A stretch of DNA of 64,000 nucleotides from Dendrobates tinctorius (taxonomy: Eukaryota), in assembly GCF_039654945.1 (NCBI RefSeq), contig NW_027361688.1, positions 53,134,001-53,198,000 on the forward strand. The letters run 5' to 3'. A program made the position numbers and the translations under genes. Each line of letters starts with the position of its first letter. Position 1 is the first letter of the stretch. A model generated the notes under the pieces. It did no database searches, was not told the DNA's origin, and saw only the letters and a list, made by a program, of their open reading frames with translations. Positions 1-57,184 of this stretch are shown here, in pieces.

Positions 1-716
1 GCCTGTGGACCAATCTGAAGCTGCCACATCACCAGAGCAGCTGATATCCGAGCACCAATGAGAAGGCGCCACATCATGGACATGCTCAGTAGGGTAAAAT
101 CTGGACTTAGGCTCCAGAGTACAACGCTGCACGTGTAAACCCGTAGTCACCATAAGATTAGCTGGAGAGCCAGCAGCAACTACACATACAGCACGAGTCT
201 GTGCTGAGCAGCCACCCCAGCGCCCGAGCCTGAATGGCAGTCCACTGCACCAGACAAGGTTTGGGATCTATCCCATGCAGCGGGAGAATCCCGGCACCTA
301 ACCATATTGAAAGCCTATACGAATGGGATACTCCAGGAAAACTTACTGCTGGACTCTACATGTCAATAGAGATTATAAAGTGAAGGAACAACCCCAAAAA
401 TCCCAACAAGAAGCAATAAACATCAGTTGGGTGCTCAGACCACTAAAATGGTAATTAAAAAAATTCTATAATATTTTTGATTTACCTGATTTTTTTGCTA
501 TAGAGTAAATTACAAACAATTTAGGTTAAAAAATGTACTGAAAATGGAAATAGAAAAGTTTCAAAATTATTTGATAATTTTATAAAAAATATTCTAAGGT
601 CCTAAAGTCCCTGATTGAAACCATCTACTAGTACAACTGATTTAAAAACAGTGCCGATTAAAGAACTCATAAACTGAAAAAAGGGAAAGACAGAGAATAG
701 ATTAAATTTATCTCAC

Positions 717-3149: not shown

Positions 3150-3430
3150 ATCTTAAATCCTTCTTCTAAAATGTGTAGAGAATAATCATCATCCCATCAA
3201 TCCAAGTGTGTGAGCAGCAAAAATATAAATCCTAGGAACGGGAAAATCCTGGTTTTCCTGCATTGAAATCATCTGCAGGGCTCTCATCGGAGCAGCAGCT
3301 CTTCTTTGTGTGAGAGACGATGGGAGGGTGAATCACTGAGCCAGGGGGAGGAGAGCGCAGGGCTGATATGTGTAAGTCTAGACCAGTATAACAGCTTCAC
3401 TAGATGACAAGACTTCCCTCTCCTGGTCAA
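3150..3430 (-). promoter_or_regulatory. Promoter/5'UTR of exon #1 with CGCT box (~3354-3357) and CTCF-like motif (3413-3426)
   Basis: ~220 bp nearly identical upstream of all 7 ATGs; minus-strand CCAGGAGAGGGAAG. Confidence 0.65.
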
Positions 3431-12015: not shown

Positions 12016-12394
12016 ATATGTATAATACAATACTAACATTATGTGGAAACAGATTATCACATGGTGCCTTTTAGCTACATACTGTAAAATAACAAGAGAA
12101 TATTATATTTAGCTGTCAGTGCATGCTGAGATCTAGAGTATGGTACATGTGAGATGTCAAGCATGCAACATGGAGAATTTGCTTAGCAGAACATTCTCTT
12201 TGTATAACTATAAAATAGAAATAAGATCATTAAAGGTATTGATCACTCATATAAATGTTACTGTACATGGATCCAGTCACAAAATATCAGAAGAATAGAA
12301 AGCAAAGTACCAGTCGGGGTATTACCCAAGCATTTTCAGCAAACAGTATGGGATAGAAAACAGGGAAATAGCCACATAAACTTCAACATCTCAC

Positions 12395-14839
12395 CTGATT
12401 AGCTTCATTTAACCAATTTGAGTTAGAAGAAGGATTTGTATGTTCAACCATACCAGTTACACGTTGATCATCTAGTGATCGAGTCAAAGAAAAATTAGGA
12501 ATATCTGTAGTCGGAGGGAAACAAACTGGATAACAAGACCCCGGAGCCTCTGGTGGAGCCATCCGCACCTCCATGTACTTCAGGGTCCCATCAGTGTTCA
12601 GGTAAAGGGTTGGCTTGTACTGATCCATGTAGGATGTAGAAAGGGATTTGTCGGTGAAGCAGAATCCACACCCAGAATCATAATTCTTTCTGAGGCACCG
12701 GACAAGTAATATAGAAAATGTGACCAGAAAAACTGCACTGATGGCCACAAGGGAGACAATTAGATACAGAGTCAGGTCTGGAGCAGATTTGGCATTAGTA
12801 AGAAAATCTTGAGATTTAGGACTTTCCTGAGCAACAGAGTCTAATATATTCACAATGATGGTGGCTGTAGTGGTCATAGAGGGTTCTCCATGGTCACTGA
12901 TGGCAATCACAAGTCGCTGTTCGGTGTTATCCGTCTCATGTAAACCTCGGAGAGTCCTGACCTCTCCTGTGTATTCAGAGATGTGGAATAAAGCAGGACT
13001 GGCAGACTGAACAAGACTATAGAGGAGCCAGGCATTGTGCCCAGAATCCACATCCACGGCAGACACCTTACTGACTAAATACCCAGCAGCTGCAGATCTC
13101 GGGATGGTCTCCTGAGCAATGGTCTCCGCTGTGTTCTCCGGGTATAAGATAGTGGGAGGGTTGTCATTTGTATCCAGAAAAAATATGAAGACGGAAACAT
13201 TGGAGGATAATTTTGGAGATCCAGAATCTTCCACTCTCGCTGTGATCTGCAGAACCTGGAATTGTTCATAGTCAAAAGACCTTTGTGCATAAATATTCCC
13301 GGAGTCAGAGTTAATATAAACGAAGGAAGAGACGGGAGAACCGTGGATGTGGCTCTCAGTGATGGAGTAAATGAGGTTTGCATTAGCTCCCTCATCTGGA
13401 TCTACAGCAGATACCGTACATAACAGTCTGCCGGCCTCATTGTTTTCTGGTGTGAAGGCATTGTACACATTGTGCAGAAATGCTGGAGGATTATCATTAA
13501 CATCAGAGATATTAAGGCTGATTGTAATCTGACTGCTGAGAGACGGAGACCCCAGATCTGATGCCTTCAGTATAATGGTATATTGTGAGCGCTTCTCCCT
13601 GTCCAGATGTCCACTAGTGACCAGAGCGTAACGCTGTGACATGGGCTGGATTTTAAAAAGTAAATTTGGTGACACATCCATTTTGATTTCACCATTATTA
13701 CCAGAATCTCTATCTCTGACTGTGATGAATCCAACCACTGTTCCTATGGGGGCATTCTCAGGAACCGCAGTATTTTTAGATATAAAATTAATTTCTGGAT
13801 TGTTATCATTGACATCTTCTATTTCCACCTGAACAACACATCGCCCCTCTAATTTGGGAGAACCGTTGTCTGCTGCTGTGACAGACAATTCAAAAAGCTT
13901 TGATCCCTCAAAATCTACATCCCCTTTAATAAATATTTCTCCAGTCTGTGGGATTAAATTGAATATCTGTTTGGCCGAATTTAAAGTATGGTGATCAAAC
14001 GAATATAATATTTCTCCATTTGGTCCCTCATCTAAATCTGTAGCATTCAACTTTATAACAATTGTTTTTAACGGAATATTTTCGAATAATTTTATTTTAT
14101 AATGTGACTGATCAAACACTGGAGGATTATCATTAATGTCTAAAACACGAACAGTTATCAGCGTAGATCCTGATCTGGCTGGATCTCCCCCATCTATAGC
14201 AGTGAGAATAAGCTGGTGCTCTGCTTTCTCCTCTCTATCAAGACTTTTTTCCAACACTAATTCAGCAATGAGGGTCCCAGCCTTACGGCTTGTAACAGAC
14301 AATGAAAAATATGGATTTGGAATTAATGTATACCGAGTGACACCATTAAGCCCAACATCTAAATCCTGTGCAATCTCTAAAGGAAAATGCACACCTGGAG
14401 TTGTTAATAGCTCAGTAATATTAACTACTTGATCTTTGTTGGAAAATATTGGAGAATTATCATTAATATCCAGAACGTCTATCTCCAGACTGTGCAGCTC
14501 CAGAGGATCCTCAGCCACAGCCTCTAAATGCAGCACACAGCTCAGGCTGGATCCACACAGGCTCTCCCTATCAATCCTCTCATCTACCACCAGAGCTCCA
14601 TTCTTCTGCTCTATAGAGAATAATCTGCTGTTTCCTTCTGATCCCAAACTCAGTCTCCTTCTCCTGATATCAGCCAGATTCACCCCCAGATCCTGAGCCA
14701 CGTTCCCCACCACAGTCCCCGGATGAGACTCCTCAGCCACAGAATAACGCAGCTGCCCAGAGACCCAGCCCCAGCTACAAAGGAGAAGGGAGAAAGCTAC
14801 TTGCCATTTCCAAGCCTTCACAAAGCTCTGATTGTCCAT
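12395..14839 (-). CDS. PCDHGC5-like: Protocadherin gamma C5-like variable exon #2
   Basis: ORF 12383..14839, same architecture; donor CAG|GTGAGA at 12395/12394. Confidence 0.93.
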
Positions 14840-15120
14840 ATCTTAAATCCTTCTACTAAAATGTGTAGAGAATAATCATCATCCCATCAATCCAAGTGTG
14901 TGAGCAGCAAAAATATAAATCCTAGGAACGGGAAAATCCTGGTTTTCCTGCATTGAAATCATCCGCAGGGCTCTCATCGGAGCAGCAGCTCTTCTTTGTG
15001 TGAGAGACGATGGGAGGGTGAATCACTGAGCCAGGGGGAGGAGAGCGCAGGGCTGATATGACTGGGTCTAAATCAGTATAGAATCTTTACTGGATGACAA
15101 GACTGCCCTCTCCTGGTCAA
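14840..15120 (-). promoter_or_regulatory. Promoter/5'UTR of exon #2; CTCF-like motif 15103-15116
   Basis: Shared 220-bp block; minus-strand CCAGGAGAGGGCAG. Confidence 0.7.
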
Positions 15121-16087
15121 TGCTAATAAATACAGTTTGTAATCATTGCCTTGTAAAATGATTTGTTCATATTTTAGAGGTTTTTCTTTTTTTTTGTGAT
15201 TTTAGCAATTATTTTATAAAAGTGGGTACACCATTATCTGCAACAACTCTCACAGTCAAACAATAAAATACGTAGAAAAAAGTAAAAATTCTTGAAAACG
15301 AAAACATAAACCTTCCATAGAAAATGGTAATACATAATACCATATTTTATTTCCAGTTGTATATTAGTTATAAACAGTGCTCAGATTTGCTGAAACTGAA
15401 TATTTAGTAAATGGTCATGAGTGGAAGAGAGTATGCACTGATTGAGCCTTTAATCTTGGAAAGTGATTAAAGAGTTCATTTCAGAATGGAAATATTAAAA
15501 GGAGAGTTATAAACAAAAAAAATGATTTTCATTTTAGGAACTTAACCACCCTTTCGCCCAGAAATAAAGAAAAACCGACACCAAATAATATCGGATTGTA
15601 AGTTCACTGTTTGGATTAGTATTACTTGGTAAGTAACTCCAAATGCATCACATATATGAAACATTTTCCATTTAGACGCATTGTCAGATCACCTTCCATA
15701 ATAATATTTTGTCATACTGTATAATAAACTAGGGCGCACACAGGTATATAGATGATTTCTCTACCACATGGTAAATACGGTATCTTCATTACTGTAATCA
15801 AAATAGATTGTCATGTGCAAAAAGACATAACATTTTAGAAGTATGAGGGCTTTTACAATGTAGTCAGGTAGGAACTAAGGCAAATATTCCTGAGAAGCCT
15901 CAAAGAGTCGTGGGCTCACAGACAGGAAAGGTCGTGAGCCCAAAAACTAAGGTTTTAGTCTAACTTCGAGCACCAGTGTTTTTTTCTCCTTAATGTAAAG
16001 TGAAAGGTTAATCCAGCAGCAATTAAAAGTTACAAATTTGCTTTTATTTTTAAAAACAGAAATTCCGTTCTTGCATTGAATGTTTTT

Positions 16088-18405
16088 TTCGTATACATTT
16101 TTTTATTGAATAAATTTTTCGCAATAACAAAATATAACAACGAAAAAAGAAAAAAACGTTATATTCACTACAAATCTAATGCAGGTTCAGTATTCTGTAA
16201 AATGATGACATCACAGATATCATTTTCCATTGTTTCCATACAGAAAATTAAAGGATGTCTCAAACACAGAAGCAATAAAGCTAACAAAGCAGTGCATAAT
16301 TTCCTTTCTCAGAACCGTATAAAAACAAAAAAGAAAGATAAGGAGGAGGGGATGGGGGTGTAGGGGAAACTCATCCCACCTGCCTCTAAAGACCAAATCA
16401 CACACTCAGTATGACTCACCCCTCTTCAGCCGATATCCAACCCTATTTGGCCGGGGCAGCTTTAGTTCTCTAATCGAATAACTCCCAAATCATTTTTAAG
16501 GTTTTCTGTTAAGTACCATCTCGTTGAGGAGAAAGGTTCAACTATCTTTTGTCTCTCTTCAGCATTACAAAATTTACCAATAAATTGTTTCCATTTTAAT
16601 AAAAATTTCCCTGCTTTTGTCTCTTTTCTTCATAAGTGCATCTCATTGCTCTACCACCATAAAGTGATGCAATTGGGCCATCAAGTCAGATAACAAAGTG
16701 GTAGAAGGACTAAGCCAGTGCTTGAGGATCAACTTTCTAGCTAAGATTAGAATGGTATGCAAAAGTTTTGGAGGGCCCCCGTATCCACAACCCCCACCTC
16801 CCCAAATCTTCCCAGGAGTGAGATCGCCAATGTTAACGTCAGCGGTGTTATGTTACTCCACAATTTGCCTAACAAACTCGAAATTGATACCCAGTATGAG
16901 GCAATAGATTTACATGACCATAATCCATGCATCAGGTCCGATCTAGGAAGCTGACTCCTGGGGCATGCAACAAGATTATCAGAGCTATGATCCAATCTAT
17001 GAATATTAAAAGCGTATATAGCTCCATCCATAATTTTGAATTGAGTCTCCCTCCAAGACTCATTAATTATGTGTTTCCGGAAAAGAAACCAACCATTTCC
17101 TGATCCTGGAAAGTGCCTCAACATTATCCAAATGTAGATTCCAATATTTTTAAAAAGTATCTGGGTAAGGACTCAACAAATCCGGATTCATTATAGAGTT
17201 GATTGTGGAGATCGAAGGGTTCCCCATAGGATGCTGGAGTAACTCATCCAGGACGTTGCGATTCGCTTCACATCTGACATCCTGTAAATTTGTCATGATC
17301 GAAAGCCTAATCTGTAGGTATTGAAAACAATGTGAGGATTTCAGTGGATGCTTTTCAAGCAATTCAGAGCACGTCAACCATCTAAGTTCTGACAGTGGAG
17401 GAGGTGAGAGACATTAGAAATATTTTTCTGTCACCAGGTAATGAATAGTTTGTTCTCCATACCTTGAGGGAATTCGGGGTTTGCCCATAGTTTTAGATAT
17501 TTAGAGATTCTATGAGGGAGGTTATATTTCTTCCTCACCGCCTTCCATGTTGAAATCGTATCTCTGAATAAAGCTGATTTTTTAAAATAAGGAGGGAGAG
17601 AGGAGAGATGAGAGTGAAAAATTGCAGCTATATCAAATACCCGCTTGGGAAGGGGATATGATTTCAGGAAGAATCACCGCCAATCTGTCCGCCATTATTT
17701 TTGAGATTAGTTTAATATCTGTGTTGATTAACAAAATAGGTCCATAAGAGGACGGGTGCGTAGGGTCTTTACCAGGCTTCAAGATTAGTTTGAAATTTGC
17801 CCTATTGGCTGAGGGGAACAAGGGATCGCCATTTAGAATTTTATTAGTCAATTGTTCCATGATTGGTATGATCTCCAGGTGAGAAGTTTAAAAAATTCGG
17901 CAATATAGCTGTCGGGTCTGGGGGCCTTATAGTTTTTTGATTTATTAATAACAGAGATTATCTCCTCTCTGGAGATTGGTTTATTAAGAAACAATTTTTG
18001 CTCCTTTGAGAACAATGGCATGGCTACCTTATACAGTAGTGTATGATAGGTCATGTTTGGGGTATTGGGCTCACTGTGAAGTGCTCCATAGTATGATCCA
18101 AGGATATTGTTGATCATCAGGGGGTCAGATTGGATTGTTCCTGAAGGATCTTTTAGCTGGTAAATCTTTTGTTGTGGTCTGATCCCCATGGTCAGATTAG
18201 CCAACACCCTACCGGCTTTGTTTCCAAGTCTATAAAAAAAAATCTCTCTTTGAGATAAGAACAATTTCTCCCTCATCTCCCCCTGGTGGCTTAATTCTGC
18301 CACCAATGCTCCTTGTTTGTTGTAGATGGATCCGTAAGAAAGGATGTATAAGCCAATATGAGCTCTGCCTTTAACTCCCTGTATCGTTTCAAAATGCGCT
18401 TCCTG
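16088..18405 (-). mobile_element. Decayed L1/Tx1 LINE, 5'-truncated with an internal RT deletion
   Basis: ORF2 remnants (GNKAGRVLANL, LILKPGKDP...YGPILLINTDIK); 17-bp TSD TTGCATTGAATGTTTTT at 16071-16087 and 18406-18422. Confidence 0.85.
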
Positions 18406-18852
18406 TTGCATTGAATGTTTTTATAAAATTAGTTCACTCCTATGGTATCATCCCCTCTGATGTGTTTCGTGCTGCTAAGACCACATAATCATAGGTAGGG
18501 AGGCAATGTTTTCTGCTAGACCGATGTAGAATTAATCAATTAGTAAAAAAATGAAGCAGAGTGCGGTAATTTTTCTCCTAGTAGCTAAATAATATAAACT
18601 TCAGCAGACAATGTAAAACAATCAAAATTCTCAGACACGATTGGCAAATGTCTAGACTTATCAGCCATCCAAACCCTGGAATTACACCATCTCTACCTTT
18701 GCACCCATTCTAGTTATTATACATTTCACCGCAGTAATGTACATTTTTGTTGACTTTACCTTACACATTTAGCTTCTTCGAAAGGCGCTGCTCTTAAATT
18801 TTAATGAGTATTACATTTACTAGAGGTTATTGGCCTATTTTGTCCATGTCAC

Positions 18853-19874
18853 TGGATCACCCGCCAGGGCAGTGGGGTACTCGGTACTGGGCCGGTATCT
18901 CAGAGGGAAGTGTCACAGTAGCAGTGACCCAGTCCGTGGCCCTGGGCATCCATGTAAAAGGGGTTGAGCATTGCTGATTAAAGTTTATAAGTGGATGATA
19001 GGTGATGCCACCTGTGGTGATCGGCAATGAAGGGGTTAAGCCGACGATGCAGGCAGCTCCTCTGGGACAGATGGTATAAGGCAGCAAGTTGTAATAGCTC
19101 CTCACAGGTGGAGCTGTGGTCCCAGGGCAGTGGTAATAGGTGTTGAGGAAGAGGGTGTAGTGTCTGGCGCAGAGATGTAGCAGTGCTGGAGGGTTTGCAG
19201 GAAGAAGGCAATGACACAACAGGGTGCACTTTCCGTTGCCTTTACTGTGCTTTGTAAGTGCAGTCCAGGGTCCAGATTACAGATGGAACAGAGGCTGGTC
19301 AGCTTGGAAGCAACTTAGGAATCTCTCTATGCAGATGGGTTGTGTAGTCTCCTTTCTAGCGCTTTCTGGGGTACTTGTAGTACTGTGTTACACTGAAGTT
19401 CCACTTGCTTATTCTCTTTTAGAACTCCCTCGTATGGCAGACAGCTGTAGACTCCTTCTGGCTCACATGTTGCTGTTGTGCCTCTGAGTCTTATGTGGGA
19501 ACAGAGCATTTACAGCTTCCTATTCCTCTGGTTTCTGCTGCAGGAACATCAGTATCCATACAACCTTGGAGACCTGACTCCAGACCATGCGCTACAGCTA
19601 GAAGTGAGCCTGAACTCTGCTCAATCCTCCAGCTCGTCTCCTCACATCCACACACTTTTCCCTCCTCACACGAACTAATTTCCCCTTACTGGCCCCCAGA
19701 GAGCAGCTCTTCCCCCAGTTTTGGTGCAGAGCTCCCTCTGCTGGCCTGGAGTGGGAACTGTGCTGTGTGTTGTATTTAACTGATAGAGACCTTTCATTGC
19801 TTCCAGGCATGACATCACACTCCCTAGGAGGAAGGTAATGCCACTGTGGCGACCATACTCCTGGGGGCGCCACA
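18853..19874 (-). mobile_element. Probable solo LTR (Gypsy-type)
   Basis: Minus strand TGTGGCGCCCC...GGGTGATCCA; degenerate 4-bp TSD (TCAC/TAAC here, TATC/TAAC in the duplicate). Confidence 0.55.
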
Positions 19875-20202
19875 TAACCTCAGGCACTGACTGAGTTTAT
19901 CCACTTAAGCATTGCCTACAAGTGTAAGTACTTTAAGGCTAAATAATTATACTGTAGTTTCTCATGATTTATGTTACTAGGGTTTACGTATCAAAATAGT
20001 TTAAAAGAAAATCCCACATTTTTCCTGATAGCAACCAGTGAGAGTCCCGTTTTCTTTTTTTTTTTTTTTTTTTTTTTTTACACTTGTGGTAAAATGCAAA
20101 CTGTTCTGTAATTGGTTTCTATGGGCAACACTGGATTGTTTTTCTTTTACTCAGGTTTGATTAATTTGCCATTGTGCATATAGACAGCAGGACATATTAA
20201 TT

Positions 20203-20675
20203 TATTTTTCACTTTGTAAGATGCACTTTTTTCAAAATTTGGGAGAAAAATGGGGATGCATCTTAGAAAGTGTACATGCCTTACCGATACCGTAGGTGTA
20301 GGCCACAAGCTGGGATAAGGTGGTGTCTGGATGTCTCCGGGTGCCCGGCGGTTGCTGGCAGGTGCTGCAGGTTTCTCTGGTGCCCAGAGGTGCTGCATTA
20401 TTATCCGGCACTGCCCGGGGCTCTGCCAATATTTTGTGACAGGCCAGAGCCCAGGCACTTCCACGGTTCCAGCTCTGAGATCTCATCTCTCGAGAGCTTG
20501 GTCCCGAGATCACCATCTGCACATGCACCGCCCAAGGCGGCGGCCATATTCCTGGAGGCCACTGCACATGGAACTGTGGAAGTGCTCTGGCCTGTCGCAA
20601 AATGTCAGCAGAGCCCCGGGCAGCTCCGGACACCCATGCAGCACCGCTGGGCACCGGAGACACCCGCAGCACTTT
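20203..20675. mobile_element. pogo/Tc1-mariner-like MITE remnant with GC-rich internal inverted repeat (duplicate at ~29425-29895)
   Basis: TTTTTC(A/G)CTTTGTAAGATGCAC terminus-like sequence; inverted arms ~20360-20450 and ~20584-20671. Confidence 0.45.
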
Positions 20676-21682
20676 ACAAATCTACAGGTTGGGACATAGC
20701 TATTCAACCTTGATTGATACCGCTGCAATATATGGGCACTATGCATATATAAACTGTTTTGCTTTTGGTTGATATCTATTGGTAGCTTGAGCCATTATCA
20801 TAATTAACCTCTGCTATGGTGTTTTTACCACTACTGGTTTTGTGTTCTTGCTCACTGTTCCCTTTTTTCTTACCTAGTTGGGAGACTCCTTTGGAAATTG
20901 TATTTTAAACGTTATAAATAAATATTCAAATTTTTTATTTTATGTTTGCCTATGCCGCTTTATCCCCTGTTTCACTAGGGTTGGCGTATGAATTTATGGT
21001 TTTTACTGGTGTAGACATTTTGTTAGCATGACATCTAGATGGTTATCTTTCTTCACATAAAATCCTGAAGGTTATCTTGTAAATAATGCTGAGATTTATT
21101 ATATTCACAATTACAGTAAATGATTGAACACTATCTTATTAGACAGTGATATAGTCATCAGTTAAGTTGATTTCTCTGCATTTGCACATTATAAAATTAA
21201 TTACGTGATTTTGCTCCAATATACTGTAAGGTTGTAGAGCTCAACAAAGTTGGGAGCGCCCATATACTTACATCTAAGTCCTATGTGGGAGTTTTGTACT
21301 CTCCAGTTGCACACTCCCTATTTCCAAGGTTGAAAATGAGGAAGACTACATTGAGAAGACAATATATACTGTATCAGAGCCGCTCAATTCCAACTTGTAA
21401 ACTTTATGTAGACATAAATTGTCACATGCTGCCTCATATCTATCTATACCACAATTAGCATTATATTTACTGGTTTGTACTTGCAGTGATTTATGGTAAA
21501 AGTGAAATATAAATGACATAATGATAACCAGATCATAAGACTATTGAAGAATCCTGAAAATATTGAGGTATTATGAAGCCAAATACTTAAACATTATAAC
21601 AAAACTTAATATGTGCCGTCAACTAAGTGTATGAGATCACAATAAAAACTGTGGAATAAAGAAAAAAGGCTCAATATCTCAC

Positions 21683-24118
21683 CTGATTAGCTTCATTTAA
21701 ACCATTTGAGTTGGAGAAAAGATCTGTGTGTTCAACTATATCAGTTGCAATTGGATCATCTAGTGATCGAGTCAAAGTAAAACCTGGAATATCTGCAGGA
21801 GGGAAGCAAGCCGGGTAACAAGACCCCGGAGCCTCTGGTGGAGCCATCCGCACCTCCATGTACTTCAGGGTCCCATCTGTGTTCAGGTAAAGGGTTGGCT
21901 TGTACTGATCCATGTAGGATGTAGAAAGGGATTTGTCAGTGAAGCAGAATCCACACCCAGAATCATTATTCTTTCTATGGCACCGGACAAGTAATATAGA
22001 AAATGTGACCAGAAAAACTGCACTAATGGCCACAAGGGAGACGATAAGATACAGGGTCAGGTCTGGAGCAGATTTGGCATTTGTAAGAAAATCTTGAGAT
22101 TTAGGACTTTCCTGAGCAACAGAATCTAATATATTCACCATGATGGTGGCTGTAGTGGTCATAGAGGGTTGTCCATGGTCACTGACCGCAATCACAAGTC
22201 GCTGCTCCGTGTTATCCGTCTCATGTAAACCTCGGAGAGTCCTGACCTCTCCTGTGTATTCAGAGATGTGGAATAAAGCAGGACTGGCAGACTGAACAAG
22301 ACTATAGAGGAGCCAGGCATTGTGCCCAGAATCCACATCCACGGCAGACACCTTACTGACTAAATACCCAGCAGCTGCAGATCTCGGGATGGTCTCCTGA
22401 GCAATGGTCTCCACTGTGTTCTCCGGGTATAAGATAGTGGGAGGGTTGTCATTTGTATCCAGAATAAATATGAAGATGGAAACATTGGAGGATAATTTTG
22501 GAGATCCAGAATCTTCCACTCTCGCTGTGATCTGCAGAACCTGGAATTGTTCATAGTCAAAAGACCTTTGTGCGTAAATATTCCCAGTGTCGGAGTTAAT
22601 GTAGACGAATGAAGAGATGGGAGAACCGTGGATGTGGCTCTCAGCGATGGAGTAAATGAGGTTTGCATTAGCTCCCTCATCCGGATCTACAGCAGATACC
22701 GTACATAACAGTCTGCCGGCCTCATTGTTTTCTGGTGTGAAGGCATTGTACACATTGTGCAGAAATGCTGGAGGATTATCATTCACATCAGAGATATTAA
22801 GGCTGATTGTAATCTGGCTGCTGAGTGACGGAGACCCCAGATCTGATGCCGTCAGTATAACGGTATATTGTGAGCGCTTCTCCCTGTCCAGATGTCCACT
22901 AGTGACCAGAGCGTAACGCTGTGACATGGGCTGGATTTTGAAAGGTAAATTTGGTGACACATCCAGTCTAATTTCACCATTATTACCAGAATCCTTATCT
23001 CTGACTGTGATGAATCCAACCGCAATTCCTATGGGGGCATTCTCAGGAACCTCATTAGTCTTGGAGGTGAAAATAATTTCAGGGGTGTTATCATTTACAT
23101 CTTTTACTTCAATCTGGATAACACAATACCCCTCTAATCTAGATGAACCTTTGTCTGTTGCTTTGACATACAATTCATAAAAATCTGAATCTTCAAAATC
23201 CAATGTATCTGCAGTTATTATTTCATTAGTTTTTGAATTTATTTGAAATATCCTTTTTGCAGAATCCAAAGTATGGTGATCAAAGGAATATGAGATGTCG
23301 CCATTTGCACCTTCATCTAGATCTGTAGCATTTAATTGTATGATAACAGAGTTTAATGGAATATTTTCTAAAACGCTGATCCTATAACTGGGCTGATGAA
23401 ACACAGGAGCATTGTCATTAATGTCTAACACGTTTACAGTTATCTGTGTAGACCCTGATTTCGGAGGATCTCCCCCATCTATAGCAGTGAGAATAAGCTT
23501 ATGTTCAGCCTTTTCCTCCCTATCAAGGCTCTTTTCTAACACAAGCTCAGTAATGAGGGTCCCATCCTTACGATGCTTTGTAAGCAGAGAAAAATAGGGA
23601 TTGGGGTTTAATTTATATTGATTTATACCATTTTTACCCACATCTAAATCTGTTGCTGTTCCTAATTGAAACCTTACTCCAGGAATAGATTCTGTAATAT
23701 TTATAATTGTATTGATGCTAGAAAATATTGGAGAATTATCATTAATATCCAGAACGTCTATCTCCAGACTGTGCAGCTCCAGAGGATCCTCAGCCACAGC
23801 CTCTAAATGCAGCACACAGCTCAGGCTGGATCCACACAGGCTCTCCCTATCAATCCTCTCATCTACCACCAGAGCTCCATTCTTCTGCTCTATAGAGAAT
23901 AATCTGCTGTTTCCTTCTGATCCCAAACTCAGTCTCCTTCTCCTAATATCAGCCAGATTCACCCCCAGATCCTGAGCCACGTTCCCCACCACAGTCCCCG
24001 GATGAGACTCCTCAGCCACAGAATAACGCAGCTGCCCAGAGACCCAGCCCCAGCTACAAAGGAGAAGGGAGAAAGCTACTTGCCATTTCCAAGCCTTCAC
24101 AAAGCTCTGGTTGTCCAT
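21683..24118 (-). CDS. PCDHGC5-like: Protocadherin gamma C5-like variable exon #3 (probable chimera)
   Basis: ORF 21671..24118; donor CAG|GTGAGA at 21683/21682; nearly identical to exon #4. Confidence 0.93.
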
Positions 24119-24400
24119 ATCTTAAATCCTTCTTCTAAAATGTGTAGAGAATAATCATCATCCCATCAATCCAAGTGTGTGAGCAGCAAAAATATAAATC
24201 CTAGGAACGGGAAAATCCTGGTTTTCCTGCATTGAAATCATCCGCAGGGCTCTCATCGGAGCAGCAGCTCTTCTTTGTGTGAGAGACGATGGGAGGGTGA
24301 ATCACTGAGCCAGGGGGAGGAGAGCGCAGGGCTGATATGACTGGGTCTAAATCAGTATAGAATCTTTACTGGATGACAAGACTGCCCTCTCCTGGTCAAT
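24119..24400 (-). promoter_or_regulatory. Promoter/5'UTR of exon #3; CTCF-like motif 24382-24395
   Basis: Nearly identical to the exon #2 promoter, including the distal part; CCAGGAGAGGGCAG. Confidence 0.7.
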
Positions 24401-25367
24401 GCTAATAAATACAGTTTGTAATCATTGCCTTGTAAAATGATTTGTTCATATTTTAGAGGTTTTTCTTCTATTTTGTGATTTTAGCAATTATTTTATAAAA
24501 GTGGGTACGCCATTATCTGCAACAACTCTCAAAGTAAAACAATAAAATATGTAGAAAAAAGTGAAAATTCTTGAAAACAAAAACATAACCTTCCATAGAA
24601 AATGGTAATACATAATACCATATTTTACTTCCAGTTGTATATTAGTTATAAACAGTGCTCAGATGTGCTGAAACTGAATATTTAGTAAATGGTCATGAGT
24701 GGAAGAGAGTATGCACTGATTGAGCCTTTAATCTTGGAAAGTAATTAAAGAGTTCATTTCAGAATGGAAATATTAAAAAGAGAGTTATAAACAAAAAAAA
24801 TGATTTTCATTTTAGGAACTTAACCACCCTTTCGCCCAGAAATAAAGAAAAACCGACACCAAATAATATCAGATTGTAAGTTCACTGTTTGGATTAGTAT
24901 TACTTGGTAAGTAACTCCAAATGCATCACATATATGAAACATTTTCCATTTAGACGCATTGTCAGATCGCCTTCCATAATAATATTTTGTCATACTGTAT
25001 AATAAACTAGGGCGCACACAGGTATATAGATGATTTCTCTACCACATGGTAAATACGGTATCTTCATTACTGTAATCAAAATAGATCGTCATGTGCAAAA
25101 AGCCACATAACATTTTAGAAGTATGAGGGCTTTTACAATGTAGTCAGGTAGGAACTAAGGCAAATATTCCTGAGAAGCCTCAAAGAGTCGTGGGCTCACA
25201 GACAGGAAAGGTCGTGAGCCCAAAAACTAAGGTTTTAGTCTAACTTCAAGCACCAGTGTTTTTTTCTCCTTAATGTAAAGTGAAAGGTTAATCCAGCAGC
25301 AATTAAAAGTTACAAATTTGCTTTTATTTTTAAAAACAGAAATTCCGTTCTTGCATTGAATGTTTTT

Positions 25368-27684
25368 TTCGTATACATTTTTTTATTGAATACATTTTTC
25401 GCAATAACAAAATATAACAACGAAAAAAGAAAAAAACGTTATATTCACTATAAATCTAATGCAGGTTCAGTATTCTGTAAAATGATGACATCACAGATAT
25501 CATTTTCCATTGTTTCCATACAGAAAATTAAAGGATGTCTCAAACACAGAAGCAATAAAGCTAACAAAGCAGTGCATAATTTCCTTTCTCAGAACCGTAT
25601 AAAAACAAAAAAGAAAGATAAGGAGGTGGGGATGGGGGTGTAGGGGAAACTCATCCCACCTGCCTCTAAAGACCAAATCACACACTCAGTATGACTCACC
25701 CCTCTTCAGCCGATATCCAACCCTATTTGGCCGGGGCAGCTTTAGTTCTCTAATCGAATAACTCCCAAATCATTTTTAAGGTTTTCTGTTAAGTACCATC
25801 TCGTTGAGGAGAAAGGTTCAACTATCTTTTGTCTCTCTTCAGCATTACAAAATTTACCAATAAATTGTTTCCATTTTAATAAAAATTTCCCTGCTTTTGT
25901 CTCTTTTCTTCATAAGTGCATCTCATTGCTCTACCACCATAAAGTGATGCAATTGGGCCATCAAGTCAGATAACAAAGTGGTAGAAGGACTAAGCCAGTG
26001 CTTGAGGATCAACTTTCTAGCTAAGATTAGAATGGTATGCAAAAGTTTTGGAGGGCCCCCGTATCCACAACCCCCACCTCCCCAAATCTTCCCAGGAGTG
26101 AGATCGCCAATGTTAACGTCAGCGGTGTTATGTTACTCCACAATTTGCCTAACAAACTTGAAATTGATACCCAGTATGAGGCAATAGATTTACATGACCA
26201 TAATCCATGCATCAGGTCCGATCTAGGAAGCTGACTCCTGGGGCATGCAACAAGATTATCAGAGCTATGATCCAATCTATGAATATTAAAAGCGTATATA
26301 GCTCCATCCATAATTTTGAATTGAGTCTCCCTCCAAGACTCATTAATTATGTGTTTCCGGAAAAGAAACCAACCATTTCCTGATCCTGGAAAGTGCCTCA
26401 ACATTATCCAAATGTAGATTCCAATATTTTTAAAAAGTATCTGGGTAAGGACTCAACAAATCCGGATTCATTATAGAGTTGATTGTGGAGATCGAAGGGT
26501 TCCCCATAGGATGCTGGAGTAACTCATCCAGGACGTTGCGATTCGCTTCACATCTGACATCCTGTAAATTTGTCATGATCGAAAGCCTAATCTGTAGGTA
26601 TTGAAAACAATGTGAGGATTTCAGTGGATGCTTTTCAAGCAATTTAGAGCACGTCAACCATCTAAGTTCTGACAGTGGAGGAGGTGAGAGACATTAGAAA
26701 TATTTTTCTGTCACCAGGTAATGAATAGTTTGTTCTCCATACCTTGAGGGAATTCGGGGTTTGCCCATAGTTTTAGATATTTAGAGATTCTATGAGGGAG
26801 GTTATATTTCTTCCTCACCGCCTTCCATGTTGAAATCGTATCTCTGAATAAAGCTGATTTTTTAAAATAAGGAGGGAGAGAGGAGAGATGAGAGTGAAAA
26901 ATTGCAGCTATATCAAATACCCGCTTGGGAAGGGGATATGATTTCTGGAAGAATCACCGCCAATCTGTCCGCCATTATTTTTGAGATTAGTTTAATATCT
27001 GTGTTGATTAACAAAATAGGTCCATAAGAGGACGGGTGCGTAGGGTCTTTACCAGGCTTCAAGATTAGTTTGAAATTTGCCCTATTGGCTGAGGGGAACA
27101 AGGGATCGCCATTTAGAATTTTATTAGTCAATTGTTCCATGATTGGTATGATCTCCAGGTGGGAAGTTTAAAAAATTCGGCAATATAGCTGTCGGATCTG
27201 GGGGCCTTATAGTTTTTTGATTTATTAATAACAGAGATTATCTCCTCTCTGGAGATTGGTTTATTAAGAAACAATTTTTGCTCCTTTGAGAACAATGGCA
27301 TGGCTACCTTATACAGTAGTGCATGATAGGTCATGTTTGGGGTATTGGGCTCACTGTGAAGTGCTCCATAGTATGATCCAAGGATATTGTTGATCATCAG
27401 GGGGTCAGATTGGATTGTTCCTGAAGGATCTTTTAGCTGGTAAATCTTTTGTTGTGGTCTGATCCCCCTGGTCAGATTAGTCAACACCCTACTGGCTTTG
27501 TTTCCATGTATATAAAAAAAATCTCTCTTTGAGATAAGAACAATTTCTCCCTCGTGTCCCCAAGGTGGTTTAATTCTGCCACCAATGCTCCTTGTTTGTT
27601 GTAGATGGATCCGTAAGAAAGGATGTATAAGCCAATATGAGCTCTGCCTTTAACTCCCTGTATCGTTTCAAAATGCGCCTCCTG
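25368..27684 (-). mobile_element. Duplicate copy of the decayed L1/Tx1 LINE
   Basis: Same ORF2 remnants and TSD (25351-25367, 27685-27700). Confidence 0.85.
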
Positions 27685-28121
27685 TTGCATTGAATGTTTT
27701 CATAAAATTAGTTCACTCCTATGGTATCATCCCCTCTGATGTGTTTCCACATAATCATAGGTAGGGAGGCAATGTTTTCTGCTAGACAGATGTAGAATTA
27801 ATCAATTAGTAAAAAAATGAAGCAGAGTGCGGTAATTTTTCTTCTAGTAGCTAAATAATATAAACTTCAGCAGACAACAATGTAAAACAATCAAAAATAT
27901 CAGACACGATTGGCAAATGTCTAGACTTATCAGCCATCCAAACCCTGGAATTACTCCATCTCTACCTTTGCACCCATTCTAGTTATTATACATTTCACCG
28001 CAGTAATGTACATTTTTGCTGACTTTACCTTACACATTTAGCTTCTTCGAAAGGCGCTGCTCTTAAATTTTAATGAGTATTACATTTACTAGAGGTTATT
28101 GGCCTATTTTGTCCATGTATC

Positions 28122-29114
28122 TGGATCGCCCGCCAGGGCAGTTGGGTACTCGGTACCGGGCCGGTATCTCAGAGGGAAGTGTCATAGTAGCAGTGACCCA
28201 GTCCGTGGCCCTGGGCATCCATGTAAAAGTGGTTGAGCGTGGCTGATTAAAGTTTATAAGTGGATGATACGTGATGCCACCTGTGGTTATCGGCAATGAA
28301 GGGGTTAAGCCGACACTGCAGGCAGCTCCTCTGGGACAGATGGTATAAGGAAGCAAAATGTAATAGCTCCCCACAGGTGGAGCTGTGGTCCCAGGGCAGT
28401 GGTAATAGGTGTTGAGGAAGAGAGTGTAGTGTCTGGCACATAGATGTAGCAGTGCTGGAGGGTTTGCAGGAAGAATGCAATGACACAACAGGGTGCAGTT
28501 TCCGTTACCTTTACTGTGCTTTGTAAGTGCAGTCCAGGGTCCTGATTACAGATGGAACAGAGGCTGGCCACCTTGGAAGCAACTTAGGAATCTCTCTATG
28601 CAGATGGGTTGTGTAATCTCCTTTCTAGCGCTTTCTGGGGTGCTTGTTCTCTTTTAGAACTCCCTCGTATGGCAGACAGCTGTAGCCTCCTTCTTCTGGC
28701 TCACACGTTGCTGTTGTGCCTCTGAGTCTTATGTGGGAACAGAGCATTTACAGCTTCCTATTCCTCCAGTTTCTGCTGCAGGAACATCAGTATCCATACA
28801 ACCTTGGAGACTGGACTCCAGACCATGCGCTACAGCTAGAAGTGAGCCTGAACTCTGCTCAATCCTCCAGCTCGTCTCCTCACGTCCACACACGTTTCCC
28901 TCCTCAGACGAACTAATTTCCCCTTACTGGCCCCCAGAGAGCAGCTCTTCCCCCAGTTTTGGTTCAGAGCTCCCTCTGCTGGCCTGGAGTGGGAACTGTG
29001 CTGTGTGTTGTATTTAACTGATAGAGAGACCCTTCATTGCTTCCAGGCATGACATCACACTCCTTAGGAGGAAGGTAATGCCACTGTGGCGACCATACTC
29101 CTGGGAGCGCCACA
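28122..29114 (-). mobile_element. Duplicate copy of the solo LTR
   Basis: Colinear with 18853-19874. Confidence 0.55.
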
Positions 29115-30340
29115 TAACCTCAGGCACTGACCGAGTTTATCCACTTAAGCATTGCCTACAAGTGTAAGTACTTTAAGACTAAACAATTATAGTTTCTCGT
29201 GAATTATGTTACTAGGCTTTACGCATCAAAATAGTGTAAATGAAAATCCCATATTTTTCCTGATAGCAACCAGTGATTGCCCTGTTTTCATTTTTTTTAT
29301 TACACTTGTGGTAAAATGCAAACTGTTCTGTAATTGGTTTCTATGGGCAACAAAGATTGTTTTTCTTTTACTCAGGTTTGATTAATTTGCCATTGTGCAT
29401 ATAGACAGCAGGACATATTAATTTATTTTTCGCTTTGTAAGATGCACTTTTTTCCAAATTTGGGAGAAAAATGGGGATGCATCTTAGAAAGTGTACATGC
29501 CTTACCGATACCGTAGGTGTAGGCCACAGATTGGGATGAGGAGGTGTCTGGATGTCTCCGTGTGCCCGGCGGTTGCTGGCAGGTGCTGCAGGTGTCTCCG
29601 GTGCCCAGCGGTGCTGCATTATTATCTGGCACTGCCCGGGGCTCTGCCAATATTTTGTGACAGGCCAGAGCCCAGGCACTTCCACGGTTCCAGCTCTGAG
29701 ATCTCATCTCTCGAGAGCTTGGTCCCGAGATCACCATCTGCACATGCACCGCCCAAGGCGGCGGCCATATTCCTGGAGGCCACTGCACATGGAACTGTGG
29801 AAGTGCTCTGGCCTGTCGCAAAATGTCAGCAGAGCCCCGGGCAGCTCCGGACACCCATGCAGCACCGCTGGGCACCGGAGACACCCGCAGCACTTTACAA
29901 ATCTACAGGTTGGGACATAGCTATTCAACCTTGATTGATACCGCTGCAATATATGGGCACTATGCATATATAAACTGTTTTGCTTTTGGTTGATATCTAT
30001 TGGTAGCTTGAGCCATTATCATAATTAACCTCTGCTATGGTGTTTTTACCACTACTGGTTTTGTGTTCTTGCTCACTGTTCCCTTTTTTCTTACCTAGTT
30101 GGGAGACTCCTTTGGAAATTGTATTTTAAACGTTATAAATAAATATTCAAATTTGTTATTTTATGTTTGCCTATGCCGCTTTATCCCCTGTTTCACTGGG
30201 GTTTGTGTATGAATTTATGGTTTTTCCTGGTGTAGACATTTGGCTAGCATGACATCTAGATGGTTATCTTTCTTCACATAAAATCGTGAAGGTTATCTTG
30301 TAAATAATGCTGAGATTTATTATATTCACAATTACAGTAA

Positions 30341-30692
30341 GGCTAAGTGCACACGTTGCAGAAATTTTCTGCTCAAAAACCTGAATCCCTTCCCAGAAAT
30401 CGCACCTATTTTTCCGCTTGCGTTTTTTGCGCAGTTTTGATGCGTTTTTGATGCGGTTTTTTTCTGCAGCGGTTTAAAACCGCATGGAAGAGGCCTAAAA
30501 TGGGGAAAATCCGCAAAATTAATGAGCATGCTGCGTTTTTTACCGCGATGCGGTTTTTTCGCGGTAAAAAACGCATCAATGTGCACAAAAAGTGCAAAAT
30601 GCATAGAAATGACTGTGCAGCTTATTTTTAGCGGTTTTATAGTGAAAACCGAGGTAAAAACCGCTAAAAAAATGCTGTATGTGAACACAGCC
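30341..30692. mobile_element. PIF/Harbinger MITE present only in duplication copy B
   Basis: TAA TSD (30338-30340, 30693-30695); TIR GGCTAAGTGCACAC/GTGAACACAGCC; empty site ACAGTAAATGATTG at ~21113-21126. Confidence 0.88.
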
Positions 30693-31258
30693 TAAATGAT
30701 TGAACACTATCTTATTAGACAGTGATATAGTCATCAATTAAGTTGATTTCTCTGCATTTGCACATTCTAAAATTAATTACGTGATTTTGCTCCAATATAC
30801 TGTAAGCTTGTACAGCTCAACAAAGTTGGGAGAGCCCATATACTTACATCTAAGTCCTATGTGGGAGTTTTGTACTCTCCAGTTGCACACTCCCTATTTC
30901 CAAGGTTGAAAATGAGGAAGACTACATTGAGAAGACAATATATACTGTATCGGAGCCGCTCAATTCCAACTTGTAAACTTTATGTAGACATAAATTGTCA
31001 CACGCTGCCTCATATCTATCTATTCCACAATTAGCATTATATTTACTGGTTTGTACTTGCAGAGATTTATGGTAAAAGTGAGATATAAATGACATAATGA
31101 TAACCAGATCATAAGACTATTGAAGAATCCTGAAAATATTGAGGTATTATGAAGTAAAATACTTAAACATTATATCAAAACTTAATATGTGCCGTCAACT
31201 AAGTGTATGAGATCACAATAAAAACTGTGGAAAAAAGAAAAAAGGCTCAATATCTCAC

Positions 31259-33694
31259 CTGATTAGCTTCATTTAAACCATTTGAGTTGGAGAAAAGATC
31301 TGTATGTTCAACTATATCAGTTGCAATTGGATCATCTAGTGATCGAGTCAAAGTAAAACCTGGAATATCTGCAGGAGGGAAACAAACTGGATAACAAGAC
31401 CCCGGAGCCTCTGGTGGAGCCATCCGCACCTCCATGTACTTCAGGGTCCCATCTGTGTTCAGGTAAAGGGTTGGCTTGTACTGATCCATGTAGGATGTAG
31501 AAAGGGATTTGTCAGTGAAGCAAAATCCACACCCAGAATCATAATTCTTTCTATGGCACCGGACAAGTAATATAGAAAATGTGACCAGAAAAACTGCACT
31601 GATGGCCACAAGGGAGACGATAAGATACAGAGTCAGGTCTGGAGCAGATTTGGCATTTGTAAGAAAATCTTGAGATTTAGGACTTTCCTGAGCAACAGAG
31701 TCTAATATATTCACAATGATGGTGGCTGTAGTGGTCATAGAGGGTTCTCCATGGTCACTGACGGCAATCACAAGTCGCTGTTCCGTGTTATCCATCTCAT
31801 GTAAAACTCGGAGAGTCCTGACCTCTCCTGTGTATTCAGAGATGTGGAATAAAGCAGGACTGGCAGACTGAACAAGACTATAGAGGAGCCAGGCATTGTG
31901 CCCAGAATCCACATCCACGGCAGACACCTTACTGACTAAATACCCAGCAGCTGCAGATCTTGGGATGGTCTCCTGAGCAATGGTCTCCACTGTGATCTCT
32001 GGGTATAAGATAGTGGGAGGGTTGTCATTTGTATCCAGAATAAATATGAAGACGGAAACATTAGAGGATAATTTTGGAGATCCAGAATCTTCCACTCTCG
32101 CTGTGATCTGCAGAACCTGGAATTGTTCATAGTCAAAAGACCTTTGTGCATAAATATTCCCGGTGTCGGAGTTAATGTAGACGAATGAAGAGATGGGAGA
32201 ACCGTGGATGTGGCTCTCAGCGATGGAGTAAATGAGGTTTGCATTAGCTCCCTCATCCGGATCTACAGCAGATACCGTACATAACAGTCTGCCGGCCTCA
32301 TTGTTTTCTGGTGTGAAGGCATTGTACACATTGTGCAGAAATGCTGGAGGATTATCATTAACATCAGAGATATTAAGGCTGATTGTAATCTGGCTGCTGA
32401 GAGATGGAGACCCCAGATCTGATGCCGTCAGTATAATGGTATATTGTGAGAGCTTCTCCCTGTCCAGATGTCCACTAGTGACCAGAGTGTAACGCTGTGA
32501 CATGGGCTGGATTTTAAAAGGTAAATTTGGTGACACATCCAGTCTAATTTCACCATTATTACCAGAATCCTTATCTTTTACTGTGATGAATCCAACCACA
32601 ATTCCTATGGGGGCATTCTCAGGAACCTCATTAGTCTTGGAGGTGAAAATAATTTCAGGGGTGTTATCATTTACATCTTTTACTTCAATCTGGATAACAC
32701 AATACCCCTCTAATCTAGGTGAACCTTTGTCTGTTGCTTTGACATACAATTCATAAAAATATGAATCTTCAAAATCCAATGTATCTGCAGTTATTATTTC
32801 ATTAGTTTTTGAATTTATTTGAAATATTCTTTTTGCAGAATCCAAAGTATGGTGATCAAAGGAATATGAGATGTTGCCATTTGCACCTTCATCTAGGTCT
32901 GTAGCATTTAATTGTATGATAACTGAGTTTAATGGAATATTTTCTAAAACGCTGATCCTATAACTGGGCTGATGAAACACAGGAGCATTGTCATTAATGT
33001 CTATTATGTTTACAGTTATCTGTGTGGACCCTGATTTCGGAGGATCTCCCCCATCTATAGCAGTGAGAATAAGCTTATGTTCAGCCTTTTCCTCCCTATC
33101 AAGGCTCTTTTCTAACACAAGCTCAGTAATGAGGGTCCCATCCATACGATGCTTTGTAAGCAGAGAAAAATAGGGATTGGGGTTTAATTTATATTGATTT
33201 ATACCATTTTTACCCACATCTAAATCTGTTGCTGTTCCTAATTGAAACCTTACTCCAGGAATAGATTCTGTAATATTTATAATTGTATTAATGCTAGAAA
33301 ATGTTGGTGAATTATCATTAATATCCAGAATGTCTATCTCCAGACTGTGCAGCTCCAGAGGATCCTCAGCCACAGCCTCTAAATGCAGCACACAGCTCAG
33401 GCTGGATCCACACAGGCTCTCCCTATCAATCCTCTCATCTACCACCAGAGCTCCATTCTTCTGCTCTATAGAGAATAATCTGCTGTTTCCTTCTGATCCC
33501 AAACTCAGTCTCCTTCTCCTGATATCAGCCAGATTCACCCCCAGATCCTGAGCCACGTTCCCCACCACAGTCCCCGGATGAGACTCCTCAGCCACAGAAT
33601 AACGCAGCTGCCCAGAGACCCAGCCCCAGCTACAAAGGAGAAGGGAGAAAGCTACTTGCCATTTCCAAGCCTTCACAAAGCTCTGATTGTCCAT
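31259..33694 (-). CDS. PCDHGC5-like: Protocadherin gamma C5-like variable exon #4
   Basis: ORF 31247..33694; donor CAG|GTGAGA at 31259/31258. Confidence 0.93.
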
Positions 33695-33968
33695 ATCTTA
33701 AATCCTTCTTCTAAAATGTGTAGAGAATAATCATCATCCCATCAATCCAAGTGTGTGAGCAGCAAAAATATAAATCCTAGGAACGGGAAAATCCTGGTTT
33801 TCCTGCATTGAAATCATCCACAGGGCTCTCATCGGAGCAGCAGCTCTTCTTTGTGTGAGAGACGATGGGAGGGTGAATCACTGAGCCAGGGGGAGGAGAG
33901 CGCAGGGCTGATATGAGCAGATCTCCTAACAATGAATCAGAATGACATGTCTGCCCTCTCCTGGCAAC
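33695..33968 (-). promoter_or_regulatory. Promoter/5'UTR of exon #4; CTCF-like motif 33951-33964
   Basis: Shared block; CCAGGAGAGGGCAG. Confidence 0.7.
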
Positions 33969-34499
33969 CTTTGAAATCTACAGCTATTGTGAGTTAATTT
34001 TCTTTAAAGGACTTTAAATCTTATTGCATAAACATACATAGTCTTAAAAATGGATATCCTTAACAATGTAATTCCATTTTTTTTAGTTATACCAAAATAA
34101 AAATTATTTCATTAAATTTATGATAATGGGATCGTCTGGAATTTAATAGAAGTAGTGACAGAAAAGTAAGTAAGAGACATCTCTCTTTTTAGACTGTCTC
34201 TTCAGGGAGAATACACACCTAGGTTGTGCACCACAATAGATCTTTCTTTGTCAGCTGTAAAAGTCCCTTTTATCAGAAATGATTTACCTCTTTTGAAATC
34301 CAAATTTGGCAAATTTTTCCTTAAAATTTTATTTGCAGATAAATTCACCTTAAATTGAAGGTAGTCCAATTGCCCTGAAAAGATGTGTATAACATTTTGA
34401 GGTCCTCTAGGGTTATATCCAAATAATTCTAAGTTCTTTAAAGAAAGCATAGCATTTGTAATGTCAGAGTGACCTCCACATATACAGTATGTCATTGGT

Positions 34500-38120: not shown

Positions 38121-38424
38121 CACCAATAGCTGATTACATCGCAATGTCTTTAAGTACAGTAACTCGGTAAATTTTATCTACTACTTACAGTTTCGGAATC
38201 ATGTATTGCAGTGTTAAAATGAAACTTATCAAAAGTTAAAAAAACACAAGAAAAACTTGAAATGTCACTAGTATTCCAAAGATTTATATATTGGGTTTCT
38301 ATCAGGAGATAAAATAGGCTTTTAAATTGAAAAAACAATGTTCAAGAAAAAGTTTCTACAAAAAAAAGCATAACAGAAAGATAGTAATTTAAAAAAGAAA
38401 AATAGAATTGGAATGTATCCTCAC

Positions 38425-57051: not shown

Positions 57052-57184
57052 TGTATGTATGTATATACTATATATTTTCTTTATATTAATAACGCATTTT
57101 TTGCAGTATTAAATGAGGTTAGAAAAAATTATCTTAATAGTATCATATGATTTGTCCATAAGATACTCATCACATCGATCTCAC

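Follow-up and report, generated by a model that had tools for sequence, protein, structure and literature searches.

Gene content of the locus

We analyzed a stretch of 64,000 nucleotides from Dendrobates tinctorius (contig NW_027361688.1 of assembly GCF_039654945.1, positions 53,134,001 to 53,198,000 of the forward strand; hereinafter the window), with the focus on one clustered protocadherin (Pcdh) gene, denoted C, whose upstream DNA matches that of one neighboring gene and whose body matches that of the other. Clustered protocadherins give neurons an individual surface identity, and the number of isoforms varies widely among vertebrates. A variable exon in these clusters is a single exon of about 2.4 kb that encodes the signal peptide, six cadherin repeats, the transmembrane segment and a short cytoplasmic part. 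The window, in which no runs of N were found over the entire 64 kb, contains seven variable-exon open reading frames (ORFs) of this type, all on the minus strand, 810-823 amino acids long and spaced 6-11 kb apart in the ORF listing. The seven genes are labelled A to G; B, C, and D correspond to genes #2, #3, and #4 of a first-pass annotation that was made from the sequence alone.

708-3149, minus strand: gene A, ORF
12383-14839, minus strand: gene B (#2), ORF of 818 aa with Pfam domains; donor of the upstream context of C; its ortholog Bv is also 818 aa
21671-24118, minus strand: gene C (#3), ORF; coding part of the variable exon 21683-24118, 812 codons to the splice donor; the junction gene with the chimeric context
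31247-33694, minus strand: gene D (#4), ORF of 815 aa with Pfam domains; donor of the body of C and of its downstream intron; its ortholog Dv is also 815 aa
38389-40860, minus strand: gene E, ORF
49282-51714, minus strand: gene F, ORF
57170-59617, minus strand: gene G, ORF

Each of the proteins encoded by B, C, and D consists, according to Pfam, of a Cadherin_2 domain, five Cadherin repeats and a Cadherin_C_2 domain, and both these domains and the best homologs identify them as gamma-like clustered Pcdh variable exons. Among database proteins, the nearest are 'protocadherin gamma-C5-like' isoforms of Ranitomeya, Phyllobates, and Anomaloglossus (90-93% identity), which at ~932 aa combine one variable exon with the constant exons. 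Given this domain composition and the structure of the nearest isoforms, the window is part of a gamma-like clustered Pcdh array. The ORF of C is intact, and its exon ends at a canonical splice donor (CAG/GTGAGA, 21683/21682).

Mosaic structure of gene C

The region upstream of C is a second copy of the region upstream of B, as the first-pass annotation had proposed (24340-31258 and 15060-21682, respectively). Self-BLAST and MAFFT alignment place the match at 24341-31258 and 15062-21682, with ~98% identity over about 6.5 kb. The segments 15062-21116 and 24341-30340 differ by 122 mismatches in 5987 aligned bases (2.0%) and by 12 indels, and the segments 21117-21670 and 30693-31246 are 97.5% identical. 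Given that the upstream DNA of D, E, F or G is not alignable with that of C (~40% identity), the match between C and B is not attributable to chance. The spacers involved, and the corresponding region of D, are listed below; Bv and Dv denote the orthologs of B and D in Ranitomeya variabilis.

15062-21682, minus strand: spacer copy IG1, between C and B (upstream of B); 98% identical to 24341-31258 and collinear with the single Dv-Bv spacer at 80-88%
24341-31258, minus strand: spacer copy IG2, between D and C (upstream of C); identified by self-BLAST, MAFFT and outgroup collinearity
33917-34396, minus strand: the distal upstream region of D itself, orthologous to the upstream region of Dv and unlike those of B and C; includes the CTCF-like motif at 33951-33964

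The body of C matches D. From the second extracellular cadherin repeat (EC2) through the end of the exon and 550 bp of the downstream intron, the two are ~98% identical; the ORFs differ at 50 of 2448 bases and the intron copies by 2.5%, in agreement with the assignment of the EC2-to-tail part and the intron of #3 to #4 in the first-pass annotation. Identity between B and C in EC2-3 is 63-82%. The two types of distal promoter recognized in that annotation were likewise recovered by a motif search of the window: ACTGGGTCTAAATCAG was found only at 15061 and 24340, that is, at B and C, and GATCTCCTAAC at 33920 (gene D), 41086 and 59843, with a variant at F. Altogether, the self-BLAST and MAFFT comparisons reveal two copies of one unit in a head-to-tail arrangement.

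A separate, weaker similarity connects B with C and D: the exon ends and the first ~400 bp of the intron (21800-21400 compared with 12500-12100) are 60-82% identical, above the values for other pairs of paralogs. This retained similarity hints at an older duplication of a unit relating B and D.

Comparison with the Ranitomeya variabilis locus

A 115-kb locus of R. variabilis (L002), in which the variable exons lie on one strand, was used as the outgroup. A contig of R. imitator was also considered for comparison and was not used, being from a different part of the cluster and only ~70% identical.

L002 3722-6289: Ev, 855 aa
L002 10001-12448: Dv, 815 aa
L002 16568-19024: Bv, 818 aa
L002 24501-26942: Av, 813 aa

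The order Ev-Dv-Bv-Av corresponds to that of E, D, B, and A in the window, and the collinear genes with their flanks are ~91-92% identical. A single D-type exon lies between Ev and Bv; no exon relic was found in the 4.1-kb Dv-Bv spacer, and no duplication of the spacer was found within L002 itself. The Dv-Bv spacer is collinear with the window spacer in five blocks of 80-93% identity and, given that this collinearity extends to both window spacers, these are copies of a single ancestral spacer. The upstream region of C matches B at 93-100% and Bv at 79-97%, with only ~40% identity to D and Dv; the downstream region of C matches D at 87-100% and Dv at 79-92%, and does not match B or Bv. Genes B and D each share their upstream context with their R. 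variabilis orthologs. The maximum-likelihood tree built for EC2-3 recovers C and D as sisters (support 96/74) and places this pair as the sister group to the Ranitomeya isoforms X23 and X32 (96/90); E groups with a separate R. variabilis isoform. Given the single D-type exon and the single D-B spacer in L002, along with the retention of the B and D contexts, C appears to be a lineage-specific addition, the derived junction gene of a tandem duplication.

The opposite polarity, under which C is ancestral and was lost in Ranitomeya through a reciprocal deletion, with the C/D and spacer similarities resulting from conversion of long tracts, is extremely improbable in our assessment. The same mispairing is indeed expected to produce reciprocal deletions, and the unequal similarity of different parts of the spacer (see below) indicates some conversion after the duplication. 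However, this scenario requires that ~9 kb of mostly non-coding DNA was kept 95-100% identical while the orthologous spacer diverged by 12-20%, and C groups with D in the tree, separated from it by a very short distance.

The shared 5' block

Self-BLAST and sliding MAFFT identity across the seven paralogs show four zones that recur in every gene. Zone 1 is a block of ~580 bp, from about -220 to about codon 110 (24340 to ~23790 in the coordinates of C), which comprises the promoter, the 5' untranslated region (UTR), the signal peptide and EC1 and is 98-100% identical in 7/7 genes. In zone 2, EC2-3, most pairs of paralogs are 62-84% identical, C and D 96-100%, and C and E 87-99%. Zone 3 covers the remainder of the exon, with 94-100% identity among the seven genes, and zone 4, the final ~110 exon bases with the flanks, is gene-specific.

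Concerted evolution was assessed by comparing A, B, D, and E with their four R. variabilis orthologs.

Signal peptide and EC1: 7 species-fixed sites common to all paralogs; 0 ortholog-consistent differences between paralogs
EC2-3: 0 species-fixed sites common to all paralogs; 180 ortholog-consistent differences between paralogs

By this measure, EC1 carries the signature of concerted evolution and EC2-3 does not. The description of the entire block as homogenized in the first-pass annotation is thus borne out for EC1 and has to be modified for the promoter. In the promoter/5'UTR part (24340-24119 of the window and its equivalents, and the regions preceding Ev, Dv, Bv, and Av in L002), 198 of the 222 columns are invariant among four paralogs in each of two genera, and identity between the species is 97-100%, compared with 79-92% in the adjoining non-coding DNA. 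This uniformity points to conservation rather than to demonstrable conversion. Given that the block as a whole is nearly invariant also between species (94-100% identity between the D. tinctorius window and R. variabilis), its uniformity is maintained both by purifying selection and by conversion. The promoter/5'UTR stretch of ~220 bp is more conserved than the coding sequence of EC2-3.

The position of the junction was mapped from all variable columns of the paralog alignment, to which the outgroup orthologs were added. At 24341-24345, C has the letters common to B and the R. variabilis ortholog of B; at 23720 and lower positions, it has the letters common to D, E, and their orthologs. Between 24341 and 23720, there are only scattered singletons and site 24244, with a derived T in D and E but not in C.

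23720-24341 (622 bp), minus strand: interval holding the recombination junction, from informative sites including outgroup orthologs and from sliding identity

The informative sites thus place the switch from B-type to D-type sequence within 24341-23720, inside the block common to all paralogs and possibly in the narrower interval 24244-23720. The junction is in register within paralogous homology, and the breakpoint maps inside, not outside, the homogenized tract.

Divergence between the copies

The differences between C and D are mostly private singletons, evenly split between the two genes, and the ORF, the spacer and the intron have diverged to a similar overall extent (2.0%, 2.0% and 2.5%, respectively), which fits a single event. 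Given that the copies differ by ~2% and that orthologous non-coding DNA of R. variabilis differs by 12-20%, the duplication is much younger than the split from that species. A derivation of C as a mosaic of D and E was also considered; it was rejected on the basis of the private singletons and because the places where C equals E are explained by D-private sites. In sequencing run X8, from a close relative, IG2 is ~3-4% different.

One structural difference between the spacers is an inserted miniature inverted-repeat transposable element (MITE).

30341-30692, no strand assigned: MITE of 352 bp with terminal inverted repeats and a TAA target-site duplication; in IG2 only, with the empty site in IG1 (TAA at 21116-21118) seen in the alignment

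The empty site in IG1 indicates that the element was inserted after the duplication. The MITE is of the PIF/Harbinger kind. An Rfam scan of the whole window gave no match, so that the insert is not a ribozyme-bearing repeat; Pfam found nothing in five spacer ORFs, and Tandem Repeats Finder detected between 15 and 31.3 kb nothing beyond a poly-T run and a short repeat that lies within the MITE.

Origin of gene C

The combination of a mosaic gene, a junction inside the shared block and an outgroup without C supports the unequal crossover between the promoter/EC1 blocks of #2 and #4 that the first-pass annotation had suggested. In the ancestral array, the gene order would have been E-D-spacer-B-A, and the nearly identical ~580-bp blocks of D and B would have mispaired, on homologues or on sister chromatids. 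A homologous exchange within the block would then produce a head-to-tail duplication of one unit of ~9.3-9.6 kb that consists of the D body, the spacer and the block. The new middle gene, C, would receive the entire upstream DNA of B, including its CTCF-like site, together with the EC2-to-tail coding sequence and the downstream intron of D, and B and D would retain their original contexts. We infer that C was probably born in this way, that is, by non-allelic homologous recombination resulting in an anti-Lepore-type tandem duplication of ~9.3-9.6 kb. A single unequal homologous exchange accounts for the seamless in-register junction, for the presence of two full copies of the ancestral spacer and for the intact flanks of the parents. 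Given that the exchange precedes the divergent part of the coding sequence, the protein would be a copy of D placed under the upstream context of B.

A similar end product could come from a tandem duplication by end joining or template switching, independent of homology, that happened to fall in the block, or from a B-type duplicate that was overwritten by conversion from D, and conversion is clearly active in this array. Nevertheless, a seamless, in-register junction is improbable without homology, given that the interval covers 622 bp of a 9.3-kb unit, and overwriting would require a conversion tract of at least 2.7 kb that includes the unalignable intron. Furthermore, a single exchange predicts two full-length copies of the ancestral spacer, and both spacers are such copies. 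We therefore consider these two routes, taken together, to be very improbable.

Several observations weigh against a simple history of unequal exchange or limit the detail in which it can be read. Given that the block was re-homogenized after the event, the exact crossover point within it and the identity of the tracts at that time are unreadable. Non-CpG divergence between the spacer copies is uneven: 0.56% in 15062-18000, 3.2% in 18001-20405 and 0.9% in 20406-21116 (the IG2 copies of the first two stretches are 24341-27280 and 27281-29630, respectively), which is a roughly six-fold contrast between the low and the high stretch. The synonymous divergence (dS) between C and D, 5.3%, is above that of the spacer. 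Given this unevenness, the history of the copies includes later conversion between them or rate variation, and the age of the duplication is uncertain. The pattern suggests partial re-homogenization between the new copies, strongest beside the block, with local rate differences as the alternative explanation. Finally, the data from the sequencing runs are Logan contigs, with no single molecule that spans the B-type upstream region, the block and the D-type body, and contig depth is a poor measure of copy number.

The last points bear on the possibility that C is an assembly artefact, such that C with IG1 and D with IG2 are two haplotypes of one locus falsely joined through the 580-bp block. 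The join would fall precisely within a repeat through which an assembler could take a wrong path, a difference of ~2% can be reached by a very divergent pair of haplotypes, and the contigs of other individuals, with their C-type or D-type letters, do not tell whether both types are on one chromosome. The window is, however, ungapped, and the 12 indels, the 352-bp MITE and the local divergence of 3-4% are high for alleles. Half of the per-copy depth would be predicted for private words if the copies were haplotypes. As a proxy, the word depth of six contigs of run X1 was compared with the multiplicity of their 31-mers in the window. Depth per window copy was 8.1-8.8 for mostly single- and two-copy contigs and 5.8-6.2 for the 6-7-copy block (6.4-8.5 with summed bins); thus, depth scales with copy number in the window, at 5.8-8.8 per copy over multiplicities of 1.4-6.3, and this approximate equality argues weakly against haplotypes. 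The block-to-spacer depth ratio, also a weak indicator derived from contig depths, is 2.6-3.9; a real duplication is expected to give 3.3, and haplotigs at least 5.6. Taking these lines of evidence together, we regard the artefact as improbable.

Promoter anatomy

Variable exons of clustered protocadherins each have their own promoter, with a conserved element or a CTCF site located ~200-300 bp upstream of the ATG, in the same orientation along the array. Pattern search of the window identified a CTCF-like 14-mer, a candidate site predicted from sequence, at -264 to -277 of B, C, D, E, F, and G, on the gene strand (minus) only and nowhere else (6 hits compared with 0.06 expected).

15103-15116, minus strand: CTCF-like 14-mer upstream of B, from the pattern search
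24382-24395, minus strand: CTCF-like 14-mer upstream of C, located 42-55 bp outside the block in the part derived from B, from the pattern search and alignment
33951-33964, minus strand: CTCF-like motif upstream of D, from the pattern search

Given that the motif is located just outside the uniform block, the copy in C came from B. B and D have an identical 14-base core and differ in the DNA around it. A CGCT-containing stretch lies within the block in the alignment. All seven genes have the same proximal promoter, over the ~220 bp next to the ATG, so that the swapped part is confined to the DNA beyond -220. Accordingly, the coupling of the #2 promoter to the #4 specificity cassette that the first-pass annotation had put forward holds for the distal DNA and does not extend to the proximal promoter. 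Gene A has a copy of the motif at ~3413-3426 with one core mismatch (GGGAAG for GGGCAG), which is why the pattern search missed it; the distal promoter of A is otherwise of the B/C type for ~100-150 bp.

Expression and coding divergence of gene C

Two sequencing runs from other individuals and other studies (X5 and X7) contain contigs that cover essentially the exon alone, and given this confinement, the contigs look like RNA. In X5, 727 bases (23026-23752) of a 731-letter contig are identical to C across 14 sites diagnostic between C and D. In X7, a contig is identical to C over 21683-21863, including 5 diagnostic sites, and continues with 25 letters that translate to QAQPNADW; the annotated dendrobatid isoforms read QAQPNAEW at the junction between the variable and constant exons. 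Given that these RNA-like contigs match C exactly and that one of them runs past 21683 into the beginning of a constant exon, C is expressed and spliced to a gamma-type constant exon, on the evidence of two other individuals, one of which provides the spliced form. Another RNA-like contig of X5, a loose end at 24340, extends from the shared block into distal DNA upstream of gene G; either transcripts, from an upstream start site or through antisense transcription, or contaminating DNA could cover the sequence beyond -220.

The proteins encoded by C and D differ in 21 residues, 8 of these in EC2-3. The ratio of nonsynonymous to synonymous divergence (omega) is 0.22 overall and 0.36 in EC2-3. 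The 8 replacements in EC2-3 may represent the start of a new recognition specificity.

Comparison with other protocadherin clusters and globin genes

In haemoglobin hybrids of the anti-Lepore type, unequal exchange between adjacent paralogs results in an extra gene located between the parents. Gene C is similar to these hybrids, and to the chimeric beta/delta-globin genes of laurasiatherian mammals (PMC4041002), in that the extra gene combines the 5' part of the downstream parent with the 3' part of the upstream parent. Unlike in the anti-Lepore globins, the exchange that yielded C took place upstream of the divergent part of the coding sequence, in a tract that does not differ between the two parents, so that the hybrid character is limited to the upstream regulatory context.

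Pcdh clusters are already accepted to grow by tandem duplication through unequal crossover (PMC4151104); the process itself is thus expected, and C is a clean new example of it. Gene C resembles other duplications and copy-number variants of Pcdh clusters in gene family and architecture. Unlike the engineered duplication of mouse Pcdh-alpha, it is natural, comprises a single unit of 9.3-9.6 kb, has a junction located within 622 bp and is polarized by an outgroup. In the mouse duplication, stochastic choice acts independently on each of the duplicated exons that have identical promoters (Kaneko et al. 2014, PMC4151104); given this precedent, C would add one independently chosen promoter unit for making a D-like isoform.

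In fugu, the homogenized tract of Pcdh genes is 3', from EC4/5 onward, and EC1-3 are reported to be unconverted (PMC1852091); in Xenopus tropicalis, only low-level conversion has been described (PMC4978886). The dendrobatid array is similar to those of fugu and other Pcdh clusters in that parts of the variable exon are homogenized among paralogs and EC2-3 are diverse and orthologous between species. Unlike fugu, and as a variant of the published pattern, it has a second, 5' uniform tract, from the core promoter to EC1, which is the site of the exchange. Thus, a 5' uniform tract, in addition to the 3' tract known from fish, can be an exchange site, and its position separates the distal promoter context from the specificity cassette.

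In the case of C, one step in the growth of Pcdh isoform number can be seen at base-pair resolution, with the parents, the product, an outgroup that lacks the product, and expression of the new exon. Genes C and D are a natural pair for examining how soon duplicated exons are independently chosen and gain distinct binding. A more general scenario, which we put forward only tentatively, is that the 5' block is a recurrent recombination hotspot that re-pairs CTCF-bearing distal promoters with EC2-3 cassettes and so alters isoform number; C would then be a young expressed product restricted to its lineage or species, its 8 EC2-3 replacements perhaps creating a new specificity of self-recognition.

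Other features of the array

Genes E (38389-40860) and D (31247-33694) are an older close pair, with 94-99% identity in EC2-3, and both have R. variabilis orthologs (L002 3722-6289 and 10001-12448). Outside the common block, their flanks are without homology. The pair could reflect either an old duplication with replaced flanks or a transferred EC2-3 cassette. In R. variabilis, the intron downstream of the fifth variable exon contains a tandem array with a period of ~390 bp (L002 37420-40328).

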